Assembly: GCA_000388065.2 (NCBI GenBank)
Contig: KB932204.1
Source: Fonticula alba ATCC 38817
Lineage: Eukaryota; Protista; Nucleariida
DNA length: 14,829 bases
Reading direction: 5' to 3' (one strand)
Shown here: positions 2,315 through 14,829 of the stretch, in pieces
Layout: every line of letters starts with the position of its first letter
Position numbering within the stretch: position 1 is the first letter of the stretch
Program-made: the position numbers and the translations under genes
The notes under the pieces: model-generated
The model's database searches: none
Seen by the model: the letters and a program-made list of their open reading frames with translations, nothing else
What the model was told of the DNA's origin: nothing

Positions 2315-3733
2315 TGTGCGCATTCACCATCACGGCGGGTCGGGGCGGGCAGGCTGGTCGCAAGGCTGACGCACAAATGGGTGATAATGACAGCGTCGAT
2401 GACTTTCTCGAAGCTCCCGGGCGAGGGATTGGCGATGAGCGAGAAGTTCGGGAACCGCCGGTGGTCCTCGTAGCCCATGTGCATGCCGCAGTCGAACATC
2501 ACTTGCTTGTTGCCGATCTTGACAAGCACACAACTCCGGCCGACGTCCTGGCCAGCACCTAGCGATACATGGCATGTGAGTTATCCGGGGGAGGGGGGGA
2601 GGGGGGGGAGGCAGAAGTGGAAGCACTCAGGAGCGTGGAGTGATCAGCAGGGGNNNNNNNNNNGGGGGGGGGCACACGCACATAGAGATCGATGTCCGAG
2701 CGCCCACGGCTGAAGGCGATCACCAGGCAGGAGAACCCATTGAACAGCTGGCACATTTGGCCGGCAATCAGGAAAGGCAGGATCATGTTCAGACGGCCGA
2801 TGGTCGAGCCGAGGAGGCCGCCCTCGCGCGAGCCGGACCGGGCACGACCGGTCGCGCCGCCGGCCACGGCCACCGAGGAGGTCGACCCGCCAACACCAGC
2901 CCCGGCCAAGGGCGGGCAGATGACGCCGGGCGTGGACTCGGTGGAGGTAAGGGCGCCGGAGTCGCCGGCCGCCGCGAGGGAGGCCGCCGCCGCGGTGGCC
3001 GCCGCGGTGGCCGTCGCCGAGGCAGACGACCCGGCGGAGGCGGCGGCCACGGCGGCCGCCATGGCCGCCGTGCTGGCCGCCGACACCGACGGCGTCAGCG
3101 GCGAGACCGGCGACAGGATGGACGAGGCCGTCCGAGACCCGGGGCCGTCGACGACGATCGCCGCGTCGCCGGACACCACATCCAGGGGCCGACGCTTGCC
3201 CAGGGTGCGCAGGGTGCGCAGCCGGCCCATCTGGTACCGGAACTGCAGGAGCTGGATGGCGCCGACGATGATGTAGAAGAGGTTGATCTGCTGCCGGGTG
3301 ACCGGGAAGTTGGGCAGGTCCGGCCAGACCAGCAGGATCCCCGACAGCAGGGCCGACAGGTAGTGGTGGATGAGCCACCAGCTGTGGATGCGCGACCCGT
3401 TGACAAGGAGGATGTGATCGCGCAGGGACAGGGTGCAATAGTAGTAGAGGACCAGGAAGTTGAAGATGGCTATCGGGAGAGGGAGAGCCACGGGCAGCCG
3501 GGCGGGGTGAGTGGCCGGGAGCCGAGCACATGGGCAGGGAGGGCATGGGGGGGGGGCTGTCTGCCTGTCTGCTTGTTTGTCTGCCTGTCTGCCTGTCTGC
3601 CTGTCTGCTTGTTTGTCTGCCTGTCTGTCTTTCTGTCTGTATGCCTATGTGCTGACCTAATGCCCAGCGGCAGCACAGTGATGGGGGTCTGCTGCACCAG
3701 CGGTGCGGCAGGAGACGCGGATGTCGGCCCCAT
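24..3733 (-). CDS. INTS11: Integrator complex subunit 11 (CPSF73-like MBL/beta-CASP endonuclease), 3'-partial. Exons 3733-3664, 2558-2375, 2223-2033, 1908-1835, 1722-1580, 1347-971, 848-733, 632-484, 190-24, then continues off the left edge
   Basis: The exons join in frame: [33 protein letters not shown]...[19 protein letters not shown]...[12 protein letters not shown] (HxHxDH)...YYAGHVIGAAMF...[18 protein letters not shown]...ITESTYATT...[18 protein letters not shown]...[10 protein letters not shown]...[36 protein letters not shown] and SAHADAKGI are INTS11-type rather than CPSF3-type. Introns 2-8 are GT-AG with matching phases. The intron 1 donor reads GC at a suspected chimeric junction. 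Confidence 0.95.
245..295 (+). repeat. Imperfect (AC)n microsatellite in INTS11 intron 8
   Basis: acacac run with gc/at interruptions. Confidence 0.9.
2281..2316 (+). repeat. (CGTG)9 microsatellite in INTS11 intron 2
   Basis: Perfect cgtg x9. Confidence 0.95.
2654..2663. other. Assembly gap (10 N)
   Basis: N run flanked by G runs. Confidence 1.
2682..3469 (-). CDS. TMEM120: TMEM120-family membrane protein, internal exon 5 (788 nt, most TM helices), out of order relative to the rest of the gene
   Basis: Translates (A)[49 protein letters not shown]...[21 protein letters not shown]...[19 protein letters not shown]...SDIDLY, matching TMEM120A [48 protein letters not shown]. Acceptor tag at 3472-3470 (phase 1); donor gtgcgt at 2681 (phase 0). 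Confidence 0.93.
3557..3665 (+). repeat. Near-identical direct copy of 5033-5133 (satellite end plus unique branch-point region of the zinc-finger intron)
   Basis: 3591-3665 is identical to 5059-5133, including the unique tail ctgtatgcctatgtgctgacctaatgccc. The copy has one extra 8-nt ctgtctgc unit. Confidence 0.92.
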
Positions 3734-3807
3734 GACTGTTCGTGGCCAGGGAGAAAGGGAGACGCCCTGCCTCCTATCAGGAAGGTCTTGAAGCGGGGAG
3801 TTCAGGG

Positions 3808-3878
<71 letters not shown>

Positions 3879-4336
3879 GGCGGCGGGCAAAGATACGCGA
3901 AAGGGCAGACGGAGAAGAGCACAGATGGCTGTATGGCCCGCACGGCGCCCGGACCCCAGGAAGGGGCGCGGCCGGCCGAAAAAGCCCGAACGCCCGCGAT
4001 CGACGCCCGGCCAATGCGGGCCGAGCGTTGGGTCCTCGACATTAATAGGATCATGTGCCCCTTGCGCGTGCCATAGCGCCGCACGCGCGTCCCACCCTGG
4101 CCGCTGGCGCTCTCCCGCGGGCGGGGGGCACACACCGGCGGGTCGATCTTGTTCCGGCTGCGAGGGGTCGGGTGTCTTTCGGCCGGCCTCCTCCAGGCCC
4201 GGAACGACGGGGCCGTCCAAAAGAACGTCTCCTCCCCCCTCCCCCCTCCCCCCTCGCCCCTCTCTTTCTCTCTTTCTCTCTTCCCCCCCCCCCCGCCCCC
4301 ACACGCCCCGCCCCACACCCAGGCACACGCACAGCC
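3734..4336. promoter_or_regulatory. Probable bidirectional promoter / 5' UTR region between head-to-head INTS11 and zinc-finger genes
   Basis: Only 603 nt separate the two divergent ATGs (3733 minus, 4337 plus). Promoter function is inferred from geometry; TSSs are unknown. Confidence 0.6.
3811..3874 (+). repeat. (AG)32 microsatellite between the divergent INTS11 and zinc-finger gene starts
   Basis: Perfect AG dinucleotide run of 64 nt. Confidence 0.97.
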
Positions 4337-5770
4337 ATGTTCAAGCGTGCTCTGAGCCACGTCTACAACCGGGCCCTCCACGGCGAGGATGAGGACTTCA
4401 ACAATGACGCTGTTGAGGCCCACTCGGACGACTCGTCCGAGGAGTCGGACCTGAGTGTGTCGGACTCGGAGCTGGATTCCGACACCGACGAGATTGACCG
4501 GCTGCGCTTCAAGATCCGCAAGCTGGAGGATCGCAACGCCAAGGGCAGCGACGATGACGACTCCACCGAGGACGATGACAGCGCGGAGGATGATGACCAG
4601 CCCCGGCGCAAGATTTTCGGCTGCCAGCTCTGCTCCAACAAGTTCTTCCATTCCGAGGCTGAAGTGGAGGAGCACCTGAAGAGCAAGGTGCGCGCGCCCT
4701 GCGACGAGCCGCATGCATGTGCTTTGCCTGTGGATCCATTCGTTTGGTGTTTCCTTTTTGGCCTCCCTCTGTTGTTGCCCTGCCTTGCCCCTGTGTGTGT
4801 CTGTTTGTCTGTTTGTCTGTTTGTCTGTCTGTTTGTCTGTTTGTCTGTTTGTCTGTCTGTCTGTCTGCCTGTCTGCTTGTTTGTCTGCCTGTCTGCCTGT
4901 CTGCTTGTTTGTCTGCCTGTCTGCCTGTCTGCCTGTCTGCCTGTCTGTCTGTTTGCCTGTCTGTCTGCTTGTCTGTCTGTCTGCTTGTCTGTCTGTCTTT
5001 CTGTCTGCTTGTCTGTCTGCTTGTTTGTCTGCCTGTCTGCCTGTCTGCTTGTTTGTCTGCCTGTCTGCCTGTCTGCTTGTTTGTCTGCCTGTCTGTCTTT
5101 CTGTCTGTATGCCTATGTGCTGACCTAATGCCCGCTCTTACAGGGTCACCTGCGTCGTGTGCGCAGCACCACCCTGGCCAGCATGACCTCCGAGGAGATC
5201 GAGGCCCAGAAGCAAAAGCGCCGGATGAAGGTGGCTCGCAAGATTGCCCGCAACATCCCGGAGGCTGCGGCTGCGCTGGAAGCCGGCGACCTGGAGAAGG
5301 TTTTCCAAATCGCCTCCCAGCAGAAGAAGCGCCCGGGCCGGAAGCGCGCCCGGCCGGGGAAGCGCGCTCGCCAGGCGGCCGCTGCCGCTGGTGGTGATGT
5401 CGCCACTGCCACGCCCGAGAAGAGCAAGAAGGACGCCGCGGCCACGCCCGAAAAGGCCAAGAAGGCCGCCGCGGCCACGCCCGAGAAGGCCAAGAAGGCC
5501 GCCGCGGCCACGCCCGAGAAGGCCAAGAAGGCCGCCGCGGCCACGCCCGAGAAGGCCAAGAAGGACGCCGCTGCCACGCCCGAGAAGGCCAAGAAGGACG
5601 CCGCTGCCACGCCCGAGAAGAGCAAGAAGGACACCGCGGCCACGCCCGAGAAGAGCAAGAAGGCCGCCGCTGCCGATCTTACCCCGGCCGAGGCCACCCC
5701 GGCCAAGAAGGCCAGCACTCCGGAGAAGACCAAGACCCGCTCGTCCAAGAAGGCCGCCAAGTCCAAGTAG
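4337..5770 (+). CDS. 325-aa protein with an acidic N-terminus, a U1/matrin-like C2H2 zinc finger, a basic helix and a histone-H1-like ATPEK repeat tail. Exons 4337-4687 and 5144-5770
   Basis: ATG at 4337, donor AAG|gtgcgc at 4688, branch-like ctgacctaat then ttacag acceptor ending 5143, stop TAG 5768-5770. Splicing completes CQLCSNKFFHSEAEVEEHLKSK|GH (C-x2-C-x13-H-x5-H). Third codon positions are strongly G/C. Nuclear or nucleolar function is inference. Confidence 0.88.
4795..5108 (+). repeat. Degenerate tetranucleotide satellite (GTCT/GTTT/GCCT/GCTT) filling the zinc-finger gene intron
   Basis: About 310 nt of interspersed gtct, gttt, gcct and gctt units read directly. Confidence 0.95.
5408..5671 (+). 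repeat. Coding tandem repeat, 8 x 33 nt, encoding ATPEK[A/S]KK[A/D][A/T]A
   Basis: Unit gccacgcccga(g/a)aag(gcc/agc)aagaagg(c/a)c(g/a)ccgc(g/t) starts at 5408 and recurs every 33 nt; the eighth unit starts at 5639. Confidence 0.95.
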
Positions 5771-6015
5771 GAGGCGCGCGGCCGTTGCGTGCGCGTCCAA
5801 GCCCGCTCTCCCTGTCCTGCGTCCTCAGCAGGGACGAGATACGAGGCCCAAAATAGATGACCGAAACACATTGCCACAGACAGCAGCATGCTTTATATAT
5901 TGTTGTGAAGGGAGGGGGAGCAGCCCACACACACCCGGAGGGAGGGACGAGCACCATGGTGGAGGGAGGGGGGCATCCCCCGCACGGGGGACCACACAGG
6001 GAGCGCGCGCCGCGA

Positions 6016-6486
6016 TCAGCTGGCATTGACCATGCGGATGTCCGCCTGCTCGGAGGGGATGCGCGCCGAGGAGGAGATGACCACGGTGTCGGTCTCCTCG
6101 TCGACCGAGTGCTCCAGGTCGCCGGTGCCCGGAGGCTCGGCGCCCGGCTCGACATCCGGGTCGTCATTGCTGAAGACGACGCGCGGCCGCGACACCGCCG
6201 GGGCGGGCTCCGGGGGGGGCTGCGACACCGGCTCCGGGTGTGGCTCAGCCGGTGCTGGCGCCGCGTCCGGGACGACGACGGGGGGGGCGGCCGGCCCCGG
6301 GGCGGCGGCCGTCCCGCAGGCGGGCTGGTGCTTCAGGAGGTTCTGGCGCTGGCGCTCCTTCTCGGTGGCCCGGCGAACGGCCTCCCGGAGGTTGCGGCTC
6401 CGGACGAGCTTCCCATGATAGATGCGCAAGGTGGTGTACATGTTGCCGGAGCCGGTGATGAGGAAGAGGACCGCGGCGGCGAGGGC
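6016..6486 (-). CDS. TMEM120: TMEM120-family protein, terminal exon 6 (last TM helix plus long Pro/acidic tail)
   Basis: Acceptor cag at 6489-6487, then ALAAAVLFLITGSGNMYTTLRIYHGKL, matching TMEM120A [27 protein letters not shown]. Stop TGA at 6018-6016. Confidence 0.88.
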   Translation of the reverse strand, partial: ALAAAVLFLITGSGNMYTTLRIYHGKLVRSRNLREAVRRATEKERQRQNLLKHQPACGTAAAPGPAAPPVVVPDAAPAPAEPHPEPVSQPPPEPAPAVSRPRVVFSNDDPDVEPGAEPPGTGDLEHSVDEETDTVVISSSARIPSEQADIRMVNAS

Positions 6487-6513
6487 CTGAGCAGCGGGGT
6501 GGCGGCGGGGTGG

Positions 6514-7299
6514 NNNNNNNNNNNNNNNNNNNNNNNNNNNNNNNNNNNNNNNNNNNNNNNNNNNNNNNNNNNNNNNNNNNNNNNNNNNNNNNNNNNNNNN
6601 NNNNNNNNNNNNNNNNNNNNNNNNNNNNNNNNNNNNNNNNNNNNNNNNNNNNNNNNNNNNNNNNNNNNNNNNNNNNNNNNNNNNNNNNNNNNNNNNNNNN
6701 NNNNNNNNNNNNNNNNNNNNNNNNNNNNNNNNNNNNNNNNNNNNNNNNNNNNNNNNNNNNNNNNNNNNNNNNNNNNNNNNNNNNNNNNNNNNNNNNNNNN
6801 NNNNNNNNNNNNNNNNNNNNNNNNNNNNNNNNNNNNNNNNNNNNNNNNNNNNNNNNNNNNNNNNNNNNNNNNNNNNNNNNNNNNNNNNNNNNNNNNNNNN
6901 NNNNNNNNNNNNNNNNNNNNNNNNNNNNNNNNNNNNNNNNNNNNNNNNNNNNNNNNNNNNNNNNNNNNNNNNNNNNNNNNNNNNNNNNNNNNNNNNNNNN
7001 NNNNNNNNNNNNNNNNNNNNNNNNNNNNNNNNNNNNNNNNNNNNNNNNNNNNNNNNNNNNNNNNNNNNNNNNNNNNNNNNNNNNNNNNNNNNNNNNNNNN
7101 NNNNNNNNNNNNNNNNNNNNNNNNNNNNNNNNNNNNNNNNNNNNNNNNNNNNNNNNNNNNNNNNNNNNNNNNNNNNNNNNNNNNNNNNNNNNNNNNNNNN
7201 NNNNNNNNNNNNNNNNNNNNNNNNNNNNNNNNNNNNNNNNNNNNNNNNNNNNNNNNNNNNNNNNNNNNNNNNNNNNNNNNNNNNNNNNNNNNNNNNNNN
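6514..7299. other. Assembly gap (786 N) at the position where TMEM120 exon 5 is expected
   Basis: N run between the exon 4 donor (7308) and the exon 6 acceptor (6487). Confidence 1.
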
Positions 7300-7308
7300 A
7301 AGACGCAC

Positions 7309-8184
7309 CATTGAGCCAAGTCTGATCGATGAAGATGTACGCCAGGGTAGCCATGACAAGCTGGATGATGGTGAAGCGGAACTTGAAGGTCTCATACTCG
7401 GCCTTGTAGCGGAAGCGGTCCTTGAAGGCCATGGCCACATTCGCCGACCCGAGGGACAGGCGAAGCATGGCCCTGCGATGCCAGGCAGGCACAGGGGGGG
7501 AGGGGGGGGGGAGGGGGGTTAGGTATCATCGCAGCCACGCCGGGCGGCGCGGGCCGGGAACACCAGGAGGGCCGTACCGCGAGGGCCGGGGGAATCGGGA
7601 GTCCAGGTTGTCGAGGCGCTTGGACAGCTCATCGATCTCTTCGAGCTCCTGCTTGGAGGCGCCTGGGAGGACAAAGTCGGTCAATACGTGAGGGAGGCCG
7701 GGAGGGGGCGGGGAGGGGGAAGGAACACGGGCCCGGCCGGCGGGGGGCGTACCCTGCTCGAGCATGAGCGACTGCAAGGTCTTGACGCGCTTGATCTGAG
7801 CGACGACCTCGCCGCGGCTGGGTGTTGGGCCGGGGGGGCGAGGGGGGGGGGGCAGAGGGGAAAGGAGGGAAGGGGGGACGGCGCAGGGGGATGGAAGAGC
7901 GCAAAAAGAGGTCAGCATGATCGCGCACGAAGGGACCGGCGAAGTACGGCCAGGCACACGCACCAGGACTCGGTGTCCTTCAGGAGCTTGCTCTCGGTCC
8001 GTCGGAGGGCGACGCTGGTCTGCTCCAGAACACGCAGTTGCGAGTGAATTGACTGGAGCTCCGGCGTGCTGGCGGTGGCACGCAGGATCGTGGTGGCCGG
8101 GACCTCGGCCGGATCGGCCGGGCGCGCCGACGCCGACGCCGACGGGTCCGGCCGGGAGGATGGGGCTGAAGACAGCGGCGCCAT
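7309..8184 (-). CDS. TMEM120: TMEM120-family protein, exons 1-4 (8184-7964, 7817-7753, 7662-7578, 7472-7309): N-terminal coiled coil and first TM helix
   Basis: Phase-consistent GT-AG splicing gives MAPLSSAP...LRRTESKLLKDTESCRGEVVAQIKRVKTL...LDSRFPRPSRAMLRLSLGSANVAMAFKDRFRYKAEYETFK..., matching the TMEM120 LYLSLVLGNVNV...KFAYKDEYEKFK motif. The ATG at 8184 follows directly after an acceptor-like cag, so an upstream exon may exist. All six exons total 1794 nt (597 aa plus stop). Confidence 0.9.
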
Positions 8185-10257: not shown

Positions 10258-13034
10258 CTACTGAATGCCGAAACTGGTGGCGTGCTCGATGGCCACCTCC
10301 AACTTCTCAAGGAGCTGGGCCTTCGAAGTGTAGGGGGGGATATCGATGCGGTTGAAGCTGGGGTGGGGGACGCGGGGGGGGCGCGCCACAAGTGCGGGGC
10401 CAGAGGCGGACATGTGAGCATGTGCGTATGTGCGAGAGAGAGGGAGGGAGGGAGGAAGAGAGAGGATGCCTGCACGCCCTCAGCATGGACACCTCCCTCC
10501 CCACCAAGAGGAGGGAGGGAGCGGCCGGTCATATGGCCGGGCGCGGGAGGGAAGTGGACTGGTAGGCGTGTATGCGTGTGCGCGGGAGATGGGCCGCGCG
10601 GAGGGGAGCGGGTGGGAAAGGGAAGGCCGTGTGTGCGTACCATGTGTGGCTCTGAGGCAGGGAGTCGCCCGAGTGCGAGGCGTCCCACTTCTCGATGCAA
10701 AAGCGCCGGATGCCGGACGACCCGACCAGGTCGCCGAAGCCGGTGGCCGGGACACGCTCGGACCCGGTGACAAACTGCAAGAGTTTCCGCCTCTTGGAGG
10801 GATCCCAACTGCGAATGACCTGAGTCGCGTGCGCGTTTTTTTTCCATCCCGAGAGTGTCAGAGAGCGCAAGAAGCCATCCGAAGGTGCGGTCCCCTTCAT
10901 TGGCGGCCCAACCCCCCGACCACCCCGGAAAGCTAGCCAAAGCAACTAGGTGCGCAACCGGCGCGCGCGCGCGCGCGTGCGCGCGTAAGCACACCCCCGC
11001 CCCAGAGGCCAGGATGGGCGGGAAAAACCCGGCACGGGGGCGGCAGATGTCGCCGGCCGGGGGAGAGGAGACGCGGGGAATTTGCGCCCCCCCCCCCCCC
11101 CCCCCTGCACAAGTGCCCTGCACCATGGGCCGGATATAACGCACCTCCCAGAACCAAACGATCTGCGGGTCAACAGGGGTGTACTTCTTGTAGATGGTGT
11201 TGCGGAACCAGTCGTCGAGGTCGATGTCATCGCGGCCGCCGATCAGGAGCTGAATGCGCGCGTGCGTGGGTGCGGGCAGGCGCGGCGAAAAGGGCCTCGA
11301 ATGTCAGCACATAGGTCCGCCCTGGGCAGGCGGCTCTCCCCCCAGACCACAGCACTGATTGTGCATATGTGTGCATGTGTGTGCGCGCGCGCACCTCCAA
11401 CTCCGATGGCTCAAATGCCTGCAGCATGGAGCGCGGGATGACCTCGTGCAGGCCGTGCAGGATGGCCGTCATCTGGGCCTCGGTGCCATGGGCGCACCGC
11501 CATGCGACATACTTCTCCACATACTCATGCTTGTTGTCATCGGTCACTTCGATGTCCTCGCCGCCGGGAGGGGGGGGGGGGGAAGGAGGGGCATCCACGC
11601 ATCCACGGAGGGGAGGGGGTCCCAGGGCGATGGGGAGAGCAAATCGTCAGTTGCGCATGTTTGTGCGTGTATGTGCAGTTGTGAGGCCATTCGCGCGCGG
11701 GGAGCAGGCCGGTTCTCTTGCCGGCAAGCCCCCCACCACCAAGCAGGAGGGCCGGGGAAATGGAGCGGGGGGCAGGAACAGGGCCGGGAACGCACCGGGT
11801 ACCAGCTCAACGCGGCGAACCTGGCCGAGGTATTCGTAGGCCGCACTGAAGTTCTCATAGATGACCCCCTCGATGGGGTTGGACAGCATCCAGTTGAAGG
11901 ACCGGTAGTGCTCGGCATCGATGGACTCCAGGTCCGACAGTGCAACGCTGTGCCCGAGGAGACTGCGTATGGTGGCGGCGGCGGGGGCGAAGCAAAGTGT
12001 GTCAGCGTCTGGCCAGGGCCACGGGCAAAGGGCAAGCGCGCGCGCGCGTCGAGAAGCAGGCCCGCCCAGTGGCCTGGCGTCCCTGATCCCTGCGCCTGGC
12101 CTCGCCCCCCCCCCCTCGGTTGGTACTCTTGTGTCCCAATGTGGATTGTGCGCGTACCGCTTGTAGAAGCTCGTGACAAAGAAGGCATCCAAGTACTTGT
12201 CGTGTAGGATGGCCATGCCAATCAAACGGCCTGGGCGGCGGTCGAGGTGACAGAGAGCAGCAGGCGTCCCGCGTGGCCAGACAGGGCATATCAGTGGATG
12301 TGGGCAAGTGCGTGCGTGTGCACGCCTGGTCGGCCGCGCACGAGGGCAATGTGGACGGGCCACCCCCGCGCCCCTTGGCATGTCCCCCCCCCCCCCCCCC
12401 CCCCAGCCGGCGGTCCACGTACCGACAAAGCGGAAGTACTCCAAATGCGAGGGATTGACCCCGCTGACGCGGCTCACGTCCAGCAGGTACTGGCCGGACT
12501 TGGCATACTCGAAGAGCCCATAGTCCGGACTGAAGGCCAGCTTGCTGACGGCGGCGAACCACTCGCGCTGCACGCCGCCATAGTCTAGGGCGCTCTCGCC
12601 GGCGAAGGTGACATTCAGCGGCCGGCGGAGGTGCTGCGGGTCGGCCCGGATGACCGCCCGGTAGGAGTCGTCCAGCAGGCGGGACCGGCGCACGCGGATG
12701 TTGAACTTCTGCACGCGCTGCGCCGCGCGGCGCGAGCTCGAGGAGGACCCGGAGGCCATGGCCGCCGCCGCGCGGCGGCTGCTCGAGGCGGCCGATCCGG
12801 CCGACCCATCGTCCGGGGCGCTGGCCGCCGCATTCTTGATGACATTCAGCGCACGCTGCAGGGCCTTGTGCTTGACGGAAAACCGGTCCACCAGGTCGCT
12901 GGAGTGTCGCGGGGTGGTGGCGCCGGCGGCGGCCCCGGGCCCGGGCCCGGCCCCGGCAGGGTCCGTCTGGGGCTGCTTTGCCGGCGCCACCGAGAAGGCC
13001 GAGGCCTCCTCCGTGTCGCCAGTCTCCGGGCGGG

Positions 13035-13066
<32 letters not shown>

Positions 13067-14829
13067 GAGCGCTGTGCGCCGGCCGCGGGGGCGAGCATGG
13101 ACGAGGAGGAGCCGGCGGTGGGGCCCGGCCCGAGGGCCGCATCGACGGCCACGGTGACCGAGGATGCCGAGGCCGAGGCCGCCCCCGACGCCGGGGCCGA
13201 GGGCGGCCGGGCCGGCAGCGGCGGCCCCGCCCCGGGGCGCTGCCGCGCGGCCAGGTACTTGTCCAGGGTGTACGGCTGCCGGGCGGCCGCCCCGGCCGAG
13301 CCGCCCTCAGCCACCATGCCCAGGGCCGAGGCCAGGGTGCGCGTCGAGCTCCCCGGCCAGGAGGGGTTCGTGGCGCCGAGGCCGCTGGCGTGATTGCGGA
13401 AGACACTGGGCGGGGACATCTTGGCCACGTTGGTCTGGAAGTTGTGGTAGTAATAGAGCCCATGGCCGTCGGTGTACATGCGCCAATCGCCGAGGGCCCG
13501 CGGCCCGTGGTAGTTCGGGTCGCCGGAGGCCACCGGCCGAGCGGCGGGCAGGTGCCCGGCGGCCGTCGGGCCCGGGCCGGCAGCCCGACGGCCGGCCCCC
13601 GCCCCGACGCTGCTCCCGATCGACCGCGCCCGCAGGAGGTCCGCCCCGCCGAAGGGGCCGGAGCGCGGCTGTGTCGCCGGGCCAGGAGCGGCGGCGGTGC
13701 CGGTGGCAGCGGCAGCAGCCGGGGCACTGGCCGACCGGGTGGCCGACCGGGGGAGGGTGCTGGAGGCGGTGGTGGTGGGCGGCGGGCGCGCGGCGCCGGC
13801 CCGGTGGGCCGTGCCACTGCGCACCGAGGGCGACTGGTTGGCCGGCAGGGTGGGCCGGTCCCACTGGGTCTCGCGCAGGTGGTGGTTGGCGTAGTAGCGC
13901 CGGCCATCATGGTCGAAGCGCTCCTCCCAGCTGCGGGCATCGGCGGCATGGGGCCCGGCGTGTGCAGCCGGGGCGGAGGACCGAGACAGGCGGCCGGGCA
14001 GCGGGAAGGTCAGGCACGGAGCGCGCGCGCCCGCGCATGGGGTCTGTCGGCGAAGGTGGGCAAGGGCGTGCACAGGTGAATGCCCGCGCGGTGGCGGGCC
14101 AGAACGCACCCTTCGGGCAGGCCGGCCGACGTGGTGAGCCGGGCCGCGGCCGCCGGCCGAGGAGGAAGCGCCGGCTGGTGCGAGGTGACCACCACCGTGG
14201 CCCCGCCGCTGCCGGCCCCGCCGCCCATGGCCGCGGCCTGCCCCATGCTCAGCACCCCGATGGAGGTGAGGGCCGCCGCCGTGCCGGACAGGGTGAACAG
14301 CTGGGCCGACGGGTTGGCAGCCGGGGGGATGGCCGCCGGCGGCCCCTGGGCCGCGTCATAGAAGTCGCTTTCGTCGCTGGTGCTGTTGGTCAGCGGCACG
14401 GCCGGCGCCTGGATGACGGTCAGATGCCCGCCGGTGGACAGCCGCCGGCCGGAGACGTGGGGATTCGAGACCCCCGCCGGCCCCCGGGGGTCGGTGGGCG
14501 AAGCGGGCGCGCCGGGGCGCGGGCGCGCCACATGCAGCGGCAGGCCCCCGGCGGCCGGAGGCCGCGCGACCGGCGGCCCGGGATGGATGGAGACTGGGTG
14601 TGGCCCAGGGGGAAAGGGGGTGGGGGGAATGTCAGCAGGGGGGGGGGGGGGCAGGCGCGCGTGTGCGACCCCCCTTGGGGCCGCTTGAGACGCGGAGGAG
14701 GGCCGCCGGGCTCCGGCGGTCGGTGGAGTCCACGCACTCTGGAGGTGGAGTGTGGCGTCGCTGCCGCGGCCGGGGTATTGCATCAGGCGACGCCCCTGGC
14801 GGTCGGTGAGCCTGCGCGCCAGAGGCAGC
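10258..14829 (-). CDS. NEDD4/Rsp5-family HECT E3 ubiquitin ligase, 5'-partial. Exons >14829-14738, 14593-14110, 13930-12423, 12230-12158, 11962-11796, 11564-11395, 11249-11145, 10819-10641, 10357-10258
   Basis: WW domain LPEG|WEERFDHDGRRYYANHHLRETQWDRP. HECT motifs VRRSRLLDDSY, FAGESALDYGGVQREWF, HLEYFRFVGRLIGMAILH, LLQFVTGSERVP, catalytic QSHT-C-FNRIDIPPY (Cys codon TG|C split by an intron) and C-terminal FGIQ* with Phe at -4. The edge exon (..GSDATLHLQISI) may be the end of a C2 domain (inference). One acceptor (11565) is non-canonical. Confidence 0.95.
13036..13065 (-). repeat. Pure (CAG)10 encoding polyglutamine in the HECT ligase linker
   Basis: Plus strand ctg x10; in frame gives RS-Q10-ARP. 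Confidence 0.9.

Follow-up and report, generated by a model that had tools for sequence, protein, structure and literature searches.

TMEM120A and TMEM120B (TACAN; Pfam family PF07851; solved structures 7f3t, 7n0k and 7f73) are proteins of about 340 residues with an N-terminal coiled-coil, a transmembrane core carrying a WW..HHY motif and a last helix; their membrane fold has six helices and a CoA-binding pocket. Genes whose exons are arranged differently in the DNA and in the protein are known from ciliate micronuclear genes and from the split genes of Giardia, where the order has been shown by continuous reads and transcripts. A third system for comparison is the contig order error in gapped short-read scaffolds, in which small adjacent contigs are swapped and their junction is closed over low-complexity sequence. 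We analysed a window of 14,829 nucleotides (nt) from Fonticula alba ATCC 38817 (contig KB932204.1 of assembly GCA_000388065.2; G000:C4:577673-592501 in our numbering of the genome assembly, 31.3 Mb in 214 scaffolds), in which a TMEM120 gene on the minus strand has its fifth exon in the wrong place. Judged from the sequence, the piece carrying exon 5 has very probably been misplaced by the assembly, and the real gene would be an ordinary collinear TMEM120 gene of six exons encoding about 597 residues.

The encoded protein shares the architecture of TMEM120A/B and is collinear with these proteins when its exons are read as 1-2-3-4-5-6. The conserved core, including the sequence WWLIHHY, is encoded by exon 5, and the last membrane helix by exon 6. 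In comparison with the roughly 340 residues of TMEM120A/B, the Fonticula protein has 597: exon 5 contains an insert of about 125 residues rich in Ala and Ser, and the last helix is followed by an acidic C-terminal tail, rich in Pro and Ala, of about 130 residues.

Exon order and family collinearity of TMEM120

As assembled, the minus strand reads exons 1-4, a gap of 786 unread positions (N), exon 6, then a gene on the plus strand (4337-5770) and finally exon 5, which sits 2547 nt past the TMEM120 stop codon on the other side of the plus-strand gene (coordinates are collected in Table 1). Each exon is open in its own frame, and the coding lengths in the order 1 to 6 (221+65+85+164+788+468) give 1791 nt, that is 597 codons. 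The splice phases are compatible solely in the order 4-5-6 (1/1, then 0/0), whereas a direct splice from exon 4 to exon 6 would join a phase 1 donor to a phase 0 acceptor and cause a frameshift. The distance from 7309 to 6486 as written is 823 nt (823 mod 3 = 1), but the size of the 786-N gap is merely estimated, so continuity of the reading frame across it says nothing. An earlier sequence-only reading had described the scrambled order, the splice compatibility of 4-5-6 and the product of 597 residues, and all of its coordinates and phases were re-verified here.

Family and structure searches were done exon by exon. On the PF07851 profile, exons 1-4 span positions 3-146, of which exon 4 takes 97-146; exon 5 matches positions 151-249 (E value 1e-42) and exon 6 gives a weak match to positions 297-321 (E 0.39), the whole being collinear in the order 4-5-6 only. 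Both exon 5 (146.8 bits) and exon 4 (36.3 bits) scored above the curated cut-off of 29.8 bits. When the whole genome was scanned with the same profile, only exons 4 and 5 of the window were matched (31.9 and 138.6 bits, respectively). As PF07851 is found nowhere else in the genome, exon 5 is needed by this gene and there is no other source of the TMEM120 core.

Solved structures of TMEM120A/B matched exon 5 with E values of 1e-25 to 1e-27. In 7f73, a TMEM120B fusion chain, residues 387-427 align with residues 3-42 of exon 4 and residues 441-538 with residues 1-98 of exon 5; a weak second stretch (2.5 bits) aligns residues 550-571 with residues 226-247 of exon 5. On the numbering of this chain the last full residue of exon 4 is 439, the split codon is 440 and exon 5 opens at 441. 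These positions run on with zero offset, so the junction between exons 4 and 5 keeps the family spacing exactly, with no residue missing and none extra. In addition, a word search among the best 8000 candidates yielded only one relative, an open reading frame of 178 residues (P0001) that is 61% identical to exon 5. P0001 starts one residue past the first codon of exon 5, and the similarity ends at the end of the exon. Scanning of metagenome contigs with P0001 gave no match.

The assembled order, together with splice sites of exon 5 that are intact and phase-compatible, is what one would see if the gene were truly scrambled, with exon 5 present only inside an intron of another gene, INTS11, and the mRNA made via two trans-splicing events between separate pre-mRNAs. 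In ciliate micronuclear genes and in Giardia such an order rests on continuous reads and transcripts, whereas here an unread gap stands at the expected place. The collinear position of exon 5 is this very gap of 786 N, and the premise that the exon is absent from it is therefore not established by a continuous sequence. Furthermore, the junctions involved are of low complexity and INTS11 would lose its splice donor. Past exon 4 the assembly gives just 9 nt of intron 4, too little to look for a pairing of the intron halves. We regard true scrambling of this gene as scarcely credible.

The displaced piece, its gap and the INTS11 intron

Exon 5 lies within a piece of 893 nt (2664-3556) bounded by G runs at 2664-2672 and 3547-3556; the sequence-only reading had already described a piece of about 890 nt with G-run ends, and our measurement agrees with it. 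A genome search found the piece in single copy in the assembly. The scaffold itself is full of gaps: 200 kb of it contained 41 runs of N, about one per 5 kb, with a median piece of 2.1 kb and 10 N as the commonest gap length. In the same 200 kb, G/C runs of five or more touched 25 of the 81 gap edges, compared with 2.2% of random positions. Since such runs are common at gap edges here, the two G runs of the displaced piece are ordinary contig ends. The length that a collinear gene requires in the 786-N gap is at least 893 nt, which is near the estimate.

The sequence suggests the following course of events. Two true neighbours, the 893-nt piece with exon 5 and a 2.9-kb piece reaching from exon 6 to INTS11 exon 1, would have been placed in the wrong order. 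The new junction would then have been closed without N across low complexity (a CAGA-type repeat and a G/C run), and the swap would have left the 786-N gap at the place of exon 5 and the 10-N gap after the piece. We infer that the true place of the piece is the 786-N gap; the manner in which the assembler would have made the join is likewise a reconstruction. A literature search found no account of the assembly procedure.

Two observations concern the gaps themselves. The 786-N gap has the same length as the in-frame part of exon 5 (2682-3467, 786 nt, 262 codons); we take this match as a coincidence, and gaps of 785 N and of 786 N are both present within 55 kb. Elsewhere on the scaffold, 95 nt are exactly identical between C4:547283-547377 and C4:555157-555251, at the edges of a 10-N and a 4418-N gap that lie 7.8 kb apart. 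This identity resembles a k-1 overlap left by an assembler, a feature shared with contig order errors, and suggests an overlap of the two contigs and a possible misplacement of the 3.35-kb contig that separates them. When a gene was sought across these identical edges, all frames of the GC-rich DNA contained long open stretches.

The present position of the piece affects a second gene. The piece lies between exons 1 and 2 of INTS11, and exon 5 of TMEM120 is thus inside INTS11 intron 1, which as assembled is 1105 nt long; the three TMEM120 introns that are complete measure 90-146 nt. The alignment of INTS11 exon 2 with solved INTS11 chains begins at their residue 11, and the remainder of the gene extends to about position 396, with the Beta-Casp and RMMBL domains encoded in 396-1469. 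According to a genome scan INTS11 is single copy, and the scans revealed no second INTS11 or TMEM120 gene that would make the oddities of this locus harmless. In the promoter region common to INTS11 and the plus-strand gene there is a long (CT)n microsatellite at 3832-3876.

From the INTS11 exon-1 donor to the G run of the displaced piece, the assembly contains a copy of a sequence that also occurs inside the intron of the plus-strand gene. The copy (3557-3665) has the direct orientation, lies 1.47 kb from the original and is exact over its first 80 nt; relative to the original it has one extra repeat unit. As it begins at the splice donor, exon 1 reads CTGG/GCATTAGG, where the slash marks the exon boundary, and GT is missing. 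An alternative donor, AG/GTCAGC at 3656, was rejected because it breaks the frame. The genome has just two occurrences of the first 33 nt of the copy, both of them in the window, and the idea of a dispersed element was rejected on this ground.

These data also have to be considered with regard to a real local duplication, in which the genuine exon 5 would lie in the 786-N gap and an identical copy, together with the 109-nt repeat, would have been inserted in INTS11 intron 1 as a mosaic of templated copies, the two copies of the exon being collapsed by the assembler. A gap of similar size at the home position, an N-free sequence that starts at INTS11 exon 1 and includes the piece, and a neighbouring 109-nt segment that is duplicated in the assembly and whose first 33 nt are found nowhere else in the genome would all be in keeping with such an event. 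However, an insertion from the second base of the intron would remove the GT donor of the sole INTS11 gene. The G/C-run ends of the piece are typical of contig ends in this assembly and not of duplication borders, so a coincidence would be required. The Fonticula alba genome is reported to contain few repeats (0.36%; bioRxiv 10.64898/2026.06.24.734286), which also weighs against duplication. It seems quite unlikely that exon 5 was duplicated.

A variant of the misassembly differs in where the false join is sought. The whole 1002 nt of 2664-3665 could be genuine TMEM120 intron 4 plus exon 5, with the junction 3665/3666 as the sole false join and the repeat truly existing twice. No break interrupts the sequence at 3556/3557, and the extra unit means that the repeat copy is not identical throughout, as this variant would have it. 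On the other hand, this variant would need at least 1002 nt, which is further away from the estimate of 786, and the same data fit a swap of the 893-nt piece equally well. We consider this variant possible but rather doubtful.

Several observations weigh against a swap of the two pieces. The displaced piece exceeds the gap estimate by 107 nt, and moving it leaves the assembly about 0.8-0.9 kb too long locally. The junctions 3665/3666 and 3556/3557 are continuous sequence with no N. The join carries an 80-nt exact copy of a nearby sequence that goes beyond simple low complexity; in this the locus differs from known contig order errors, and neither the junctions nor the copy could be derived from a specific assembler step. 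In a search of the protein collection with exon 6 (261-830 residues), the NCBI model H696_02672 alone was returned, with no transcript-derived protein containing the 4-5-6 junctions. Moreover, a perfect duplicate would give the same picture, namely one collapsed copy and a gap of similar size.

The eIF3e locus

A second gene with the same type of disorder was found on scaffold C12 (G000:C12:631250-632500, corresponding to L033:4249-5500), where the gene for eIF3e is broken into pieces. Human eIF3e was used as the reference for pieces C, D and E/F, and pieces A and B were placed by their matches to the eIF3_N profile. On one strand the order is gap, C, D, A, B, gap, E/F, and the exon with the start codon thus lies downstream of the pieces that correspond to residues 127-201. 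Pieces C and D are individually weak (E 0.2-0.3), yet eIF3e was the sole protein matched. The D/A junction is inside a contig free of N and consists of low-complexity sequence, including a (CCT)n repeat.

The layout is common to eIF3e and TMEM120: a gap, the second piece, the first piece joined to it without N across low complexity, and a small gap. Two unrelated housekeeping genes with one pattern, both beside gaps, point to the assembler and not to biology. For a duplication, the eIF3e layout would need a second such event, this time including a start codon. Similarly, if the order were real in both cases, Fonticula alba would truly carry TMEM120 exon 5 and parts of eIF3e out of order, and the mRNAs of both genes would need trans-splicing or reordering, which we hold to be extremely improbable.

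A swap of contigs would account for the locus in the way that known contig order errors do. The displaced piece is shorter than 1 kb, has homopolymer ends, leaves a gap at the vacated place, and the pattern recurs at eIF3e; the piece is single copy with typical contig ends, the gap fits, and the same pattern is seen at an unrelated locus. The ranking proposed from the letters alone, which put misassembly ahead of a real duplicate and true scrambling in last place, was kept and has become sharper through the single-copy status, the G/C-run ends, the lost INTS11 donor and the eIF3e locus. The order error in at least one other gene means that gene-content and gene-structure statistics derived from this assembly deserve caution. 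The practical value of the analysis is a corrected gene model; new biology would follow only if the order proved real.

Public annotation and neighbouring genes

Table 1. Positions of the features in the window and, where marked L033, at the eIF3e locus (a slash in a sequence marks an exon boundary)
Feature	Position	Strand	Description
TMEM120 exon 1	7964-8184	-	ATG 8184-8182; ends TG/gtgcgt, phase 2; matches the N-terminus of H696_02672 identically
TMEM120 exon 2	7753-7817	-	sequence reading and comparison with the NCBI model
TMEM120 exon 3	7578-7662	-	sequence reading and comparison with the NCBI model
TMEM120 exon 4	7309-7472	-	ends AAT G/gtgcgt, phase 1; Pfam PF07851 97-146, E 5e-9; TMEM120B chain 387-427
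TMEM120 exon 5	2682-3469	-	788 nt; starts tag/CC ATC (phase 1), ends CTC TAT/gtgcgt (phase 0)
TMEM120 exon 6	6016-6486	-	coding 6486-6019, TGA 6018-6016; starts cag/GCC, phase 0; weak Pfam match
Assembly gap	6514-7299		786 N; place where a collinear gene needs exon 5
Displaced piece	2664-3556		893 nt; exon 5 flanked by intron sequence (intron 4, 87 nt; intron 5, 18 nt)
Placeholder gap	2654-2663		10 N; C/G runs flank both sides
INTS11 exon 1	3664-3733	-	23 residues (...ITVLPL) and G of a split codon; then GCATTAGG, no GT
INTS11 exon 2	2376-2558	-	AGQDVGRSC...; exact start, approximate 3' end; matches solved INTS11 structures (E 1e-17)
Repeat copy	3557-3665	-	109 nt, start of a CAGA-type repeat; from the INTS11 exon-1 donor to the G run of the displaced piece
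Repeat original	5030-5133	-	inside intron 4688-5143 of the plus-strand gene
Plus-strand gene	4337-5770	+	exon 1 4337-4687, intron 4688-5143, exon 2 5144-5770
Gap at eIF3e	L033 2644-4248		1605 N
eIF3e piece C	L033 from 4274		human eIF3e 127-159
eIF3e piece D	L033 from 4509		human eIF3e 164-201
eIF3e piece A	L033 4883-5077		start codon, eIF3_N profile 1-65
eIF3e piece B	L033 5260-5385		eIF3_N profile 78-119
Gap at eIF3e	L033 5501-5661		161 N
eIF3e piece E/F	L033 within 5664-7271		human eIF3e 230-387, E 1e-45

The NCBI model H696_02672, a protein of 318 residues, is 100% identical to the product of exon 6; it cuts exon 4 at a cryptic in-frame donor (CTT/gtcatg, 7358) and splices to exon 6 (...TIIQL/ALAAAV...), skipping exon 5, and its Pfam match ends at profile position 143. 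The sequence-only reading had expected automatic annotation to split the gene into three fragments; the gene has indeed been mis-modelled, although as one truncated model and not as three. About 280 residues, the conserved membrane core among them, are missing from H696_02672, and comparisons of TMEM120/TACAN that use the Fonticula proteome therefore see a truncated protein. A word search with exon 5 (144-458 residues) found no protein containing this exon among the best 8000 word-sharing candidates, a list that the low-complexity insert may have crowded.

The gene on the plus strand, which separates exon 6 from exon 5 in the assembly, encodes a protein of 325 residues with a weak C2H2 jaz-type zinc finger in exon 1. 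Its intron of 456 nt contains a CAGA/CAAA microsatellite of about 350 nt. Exon 2 includes ten tandem coding repeats of 33 nt (5335-5763), which give the protein a Lys/Ala-rich tail of TPEKAKK-type units. At the other end of the window, an open frame on the minus strand (11650-14109) encodes a WW domain plus a partial HECT ubiquitin-ligase domain and is NEDD4-like.

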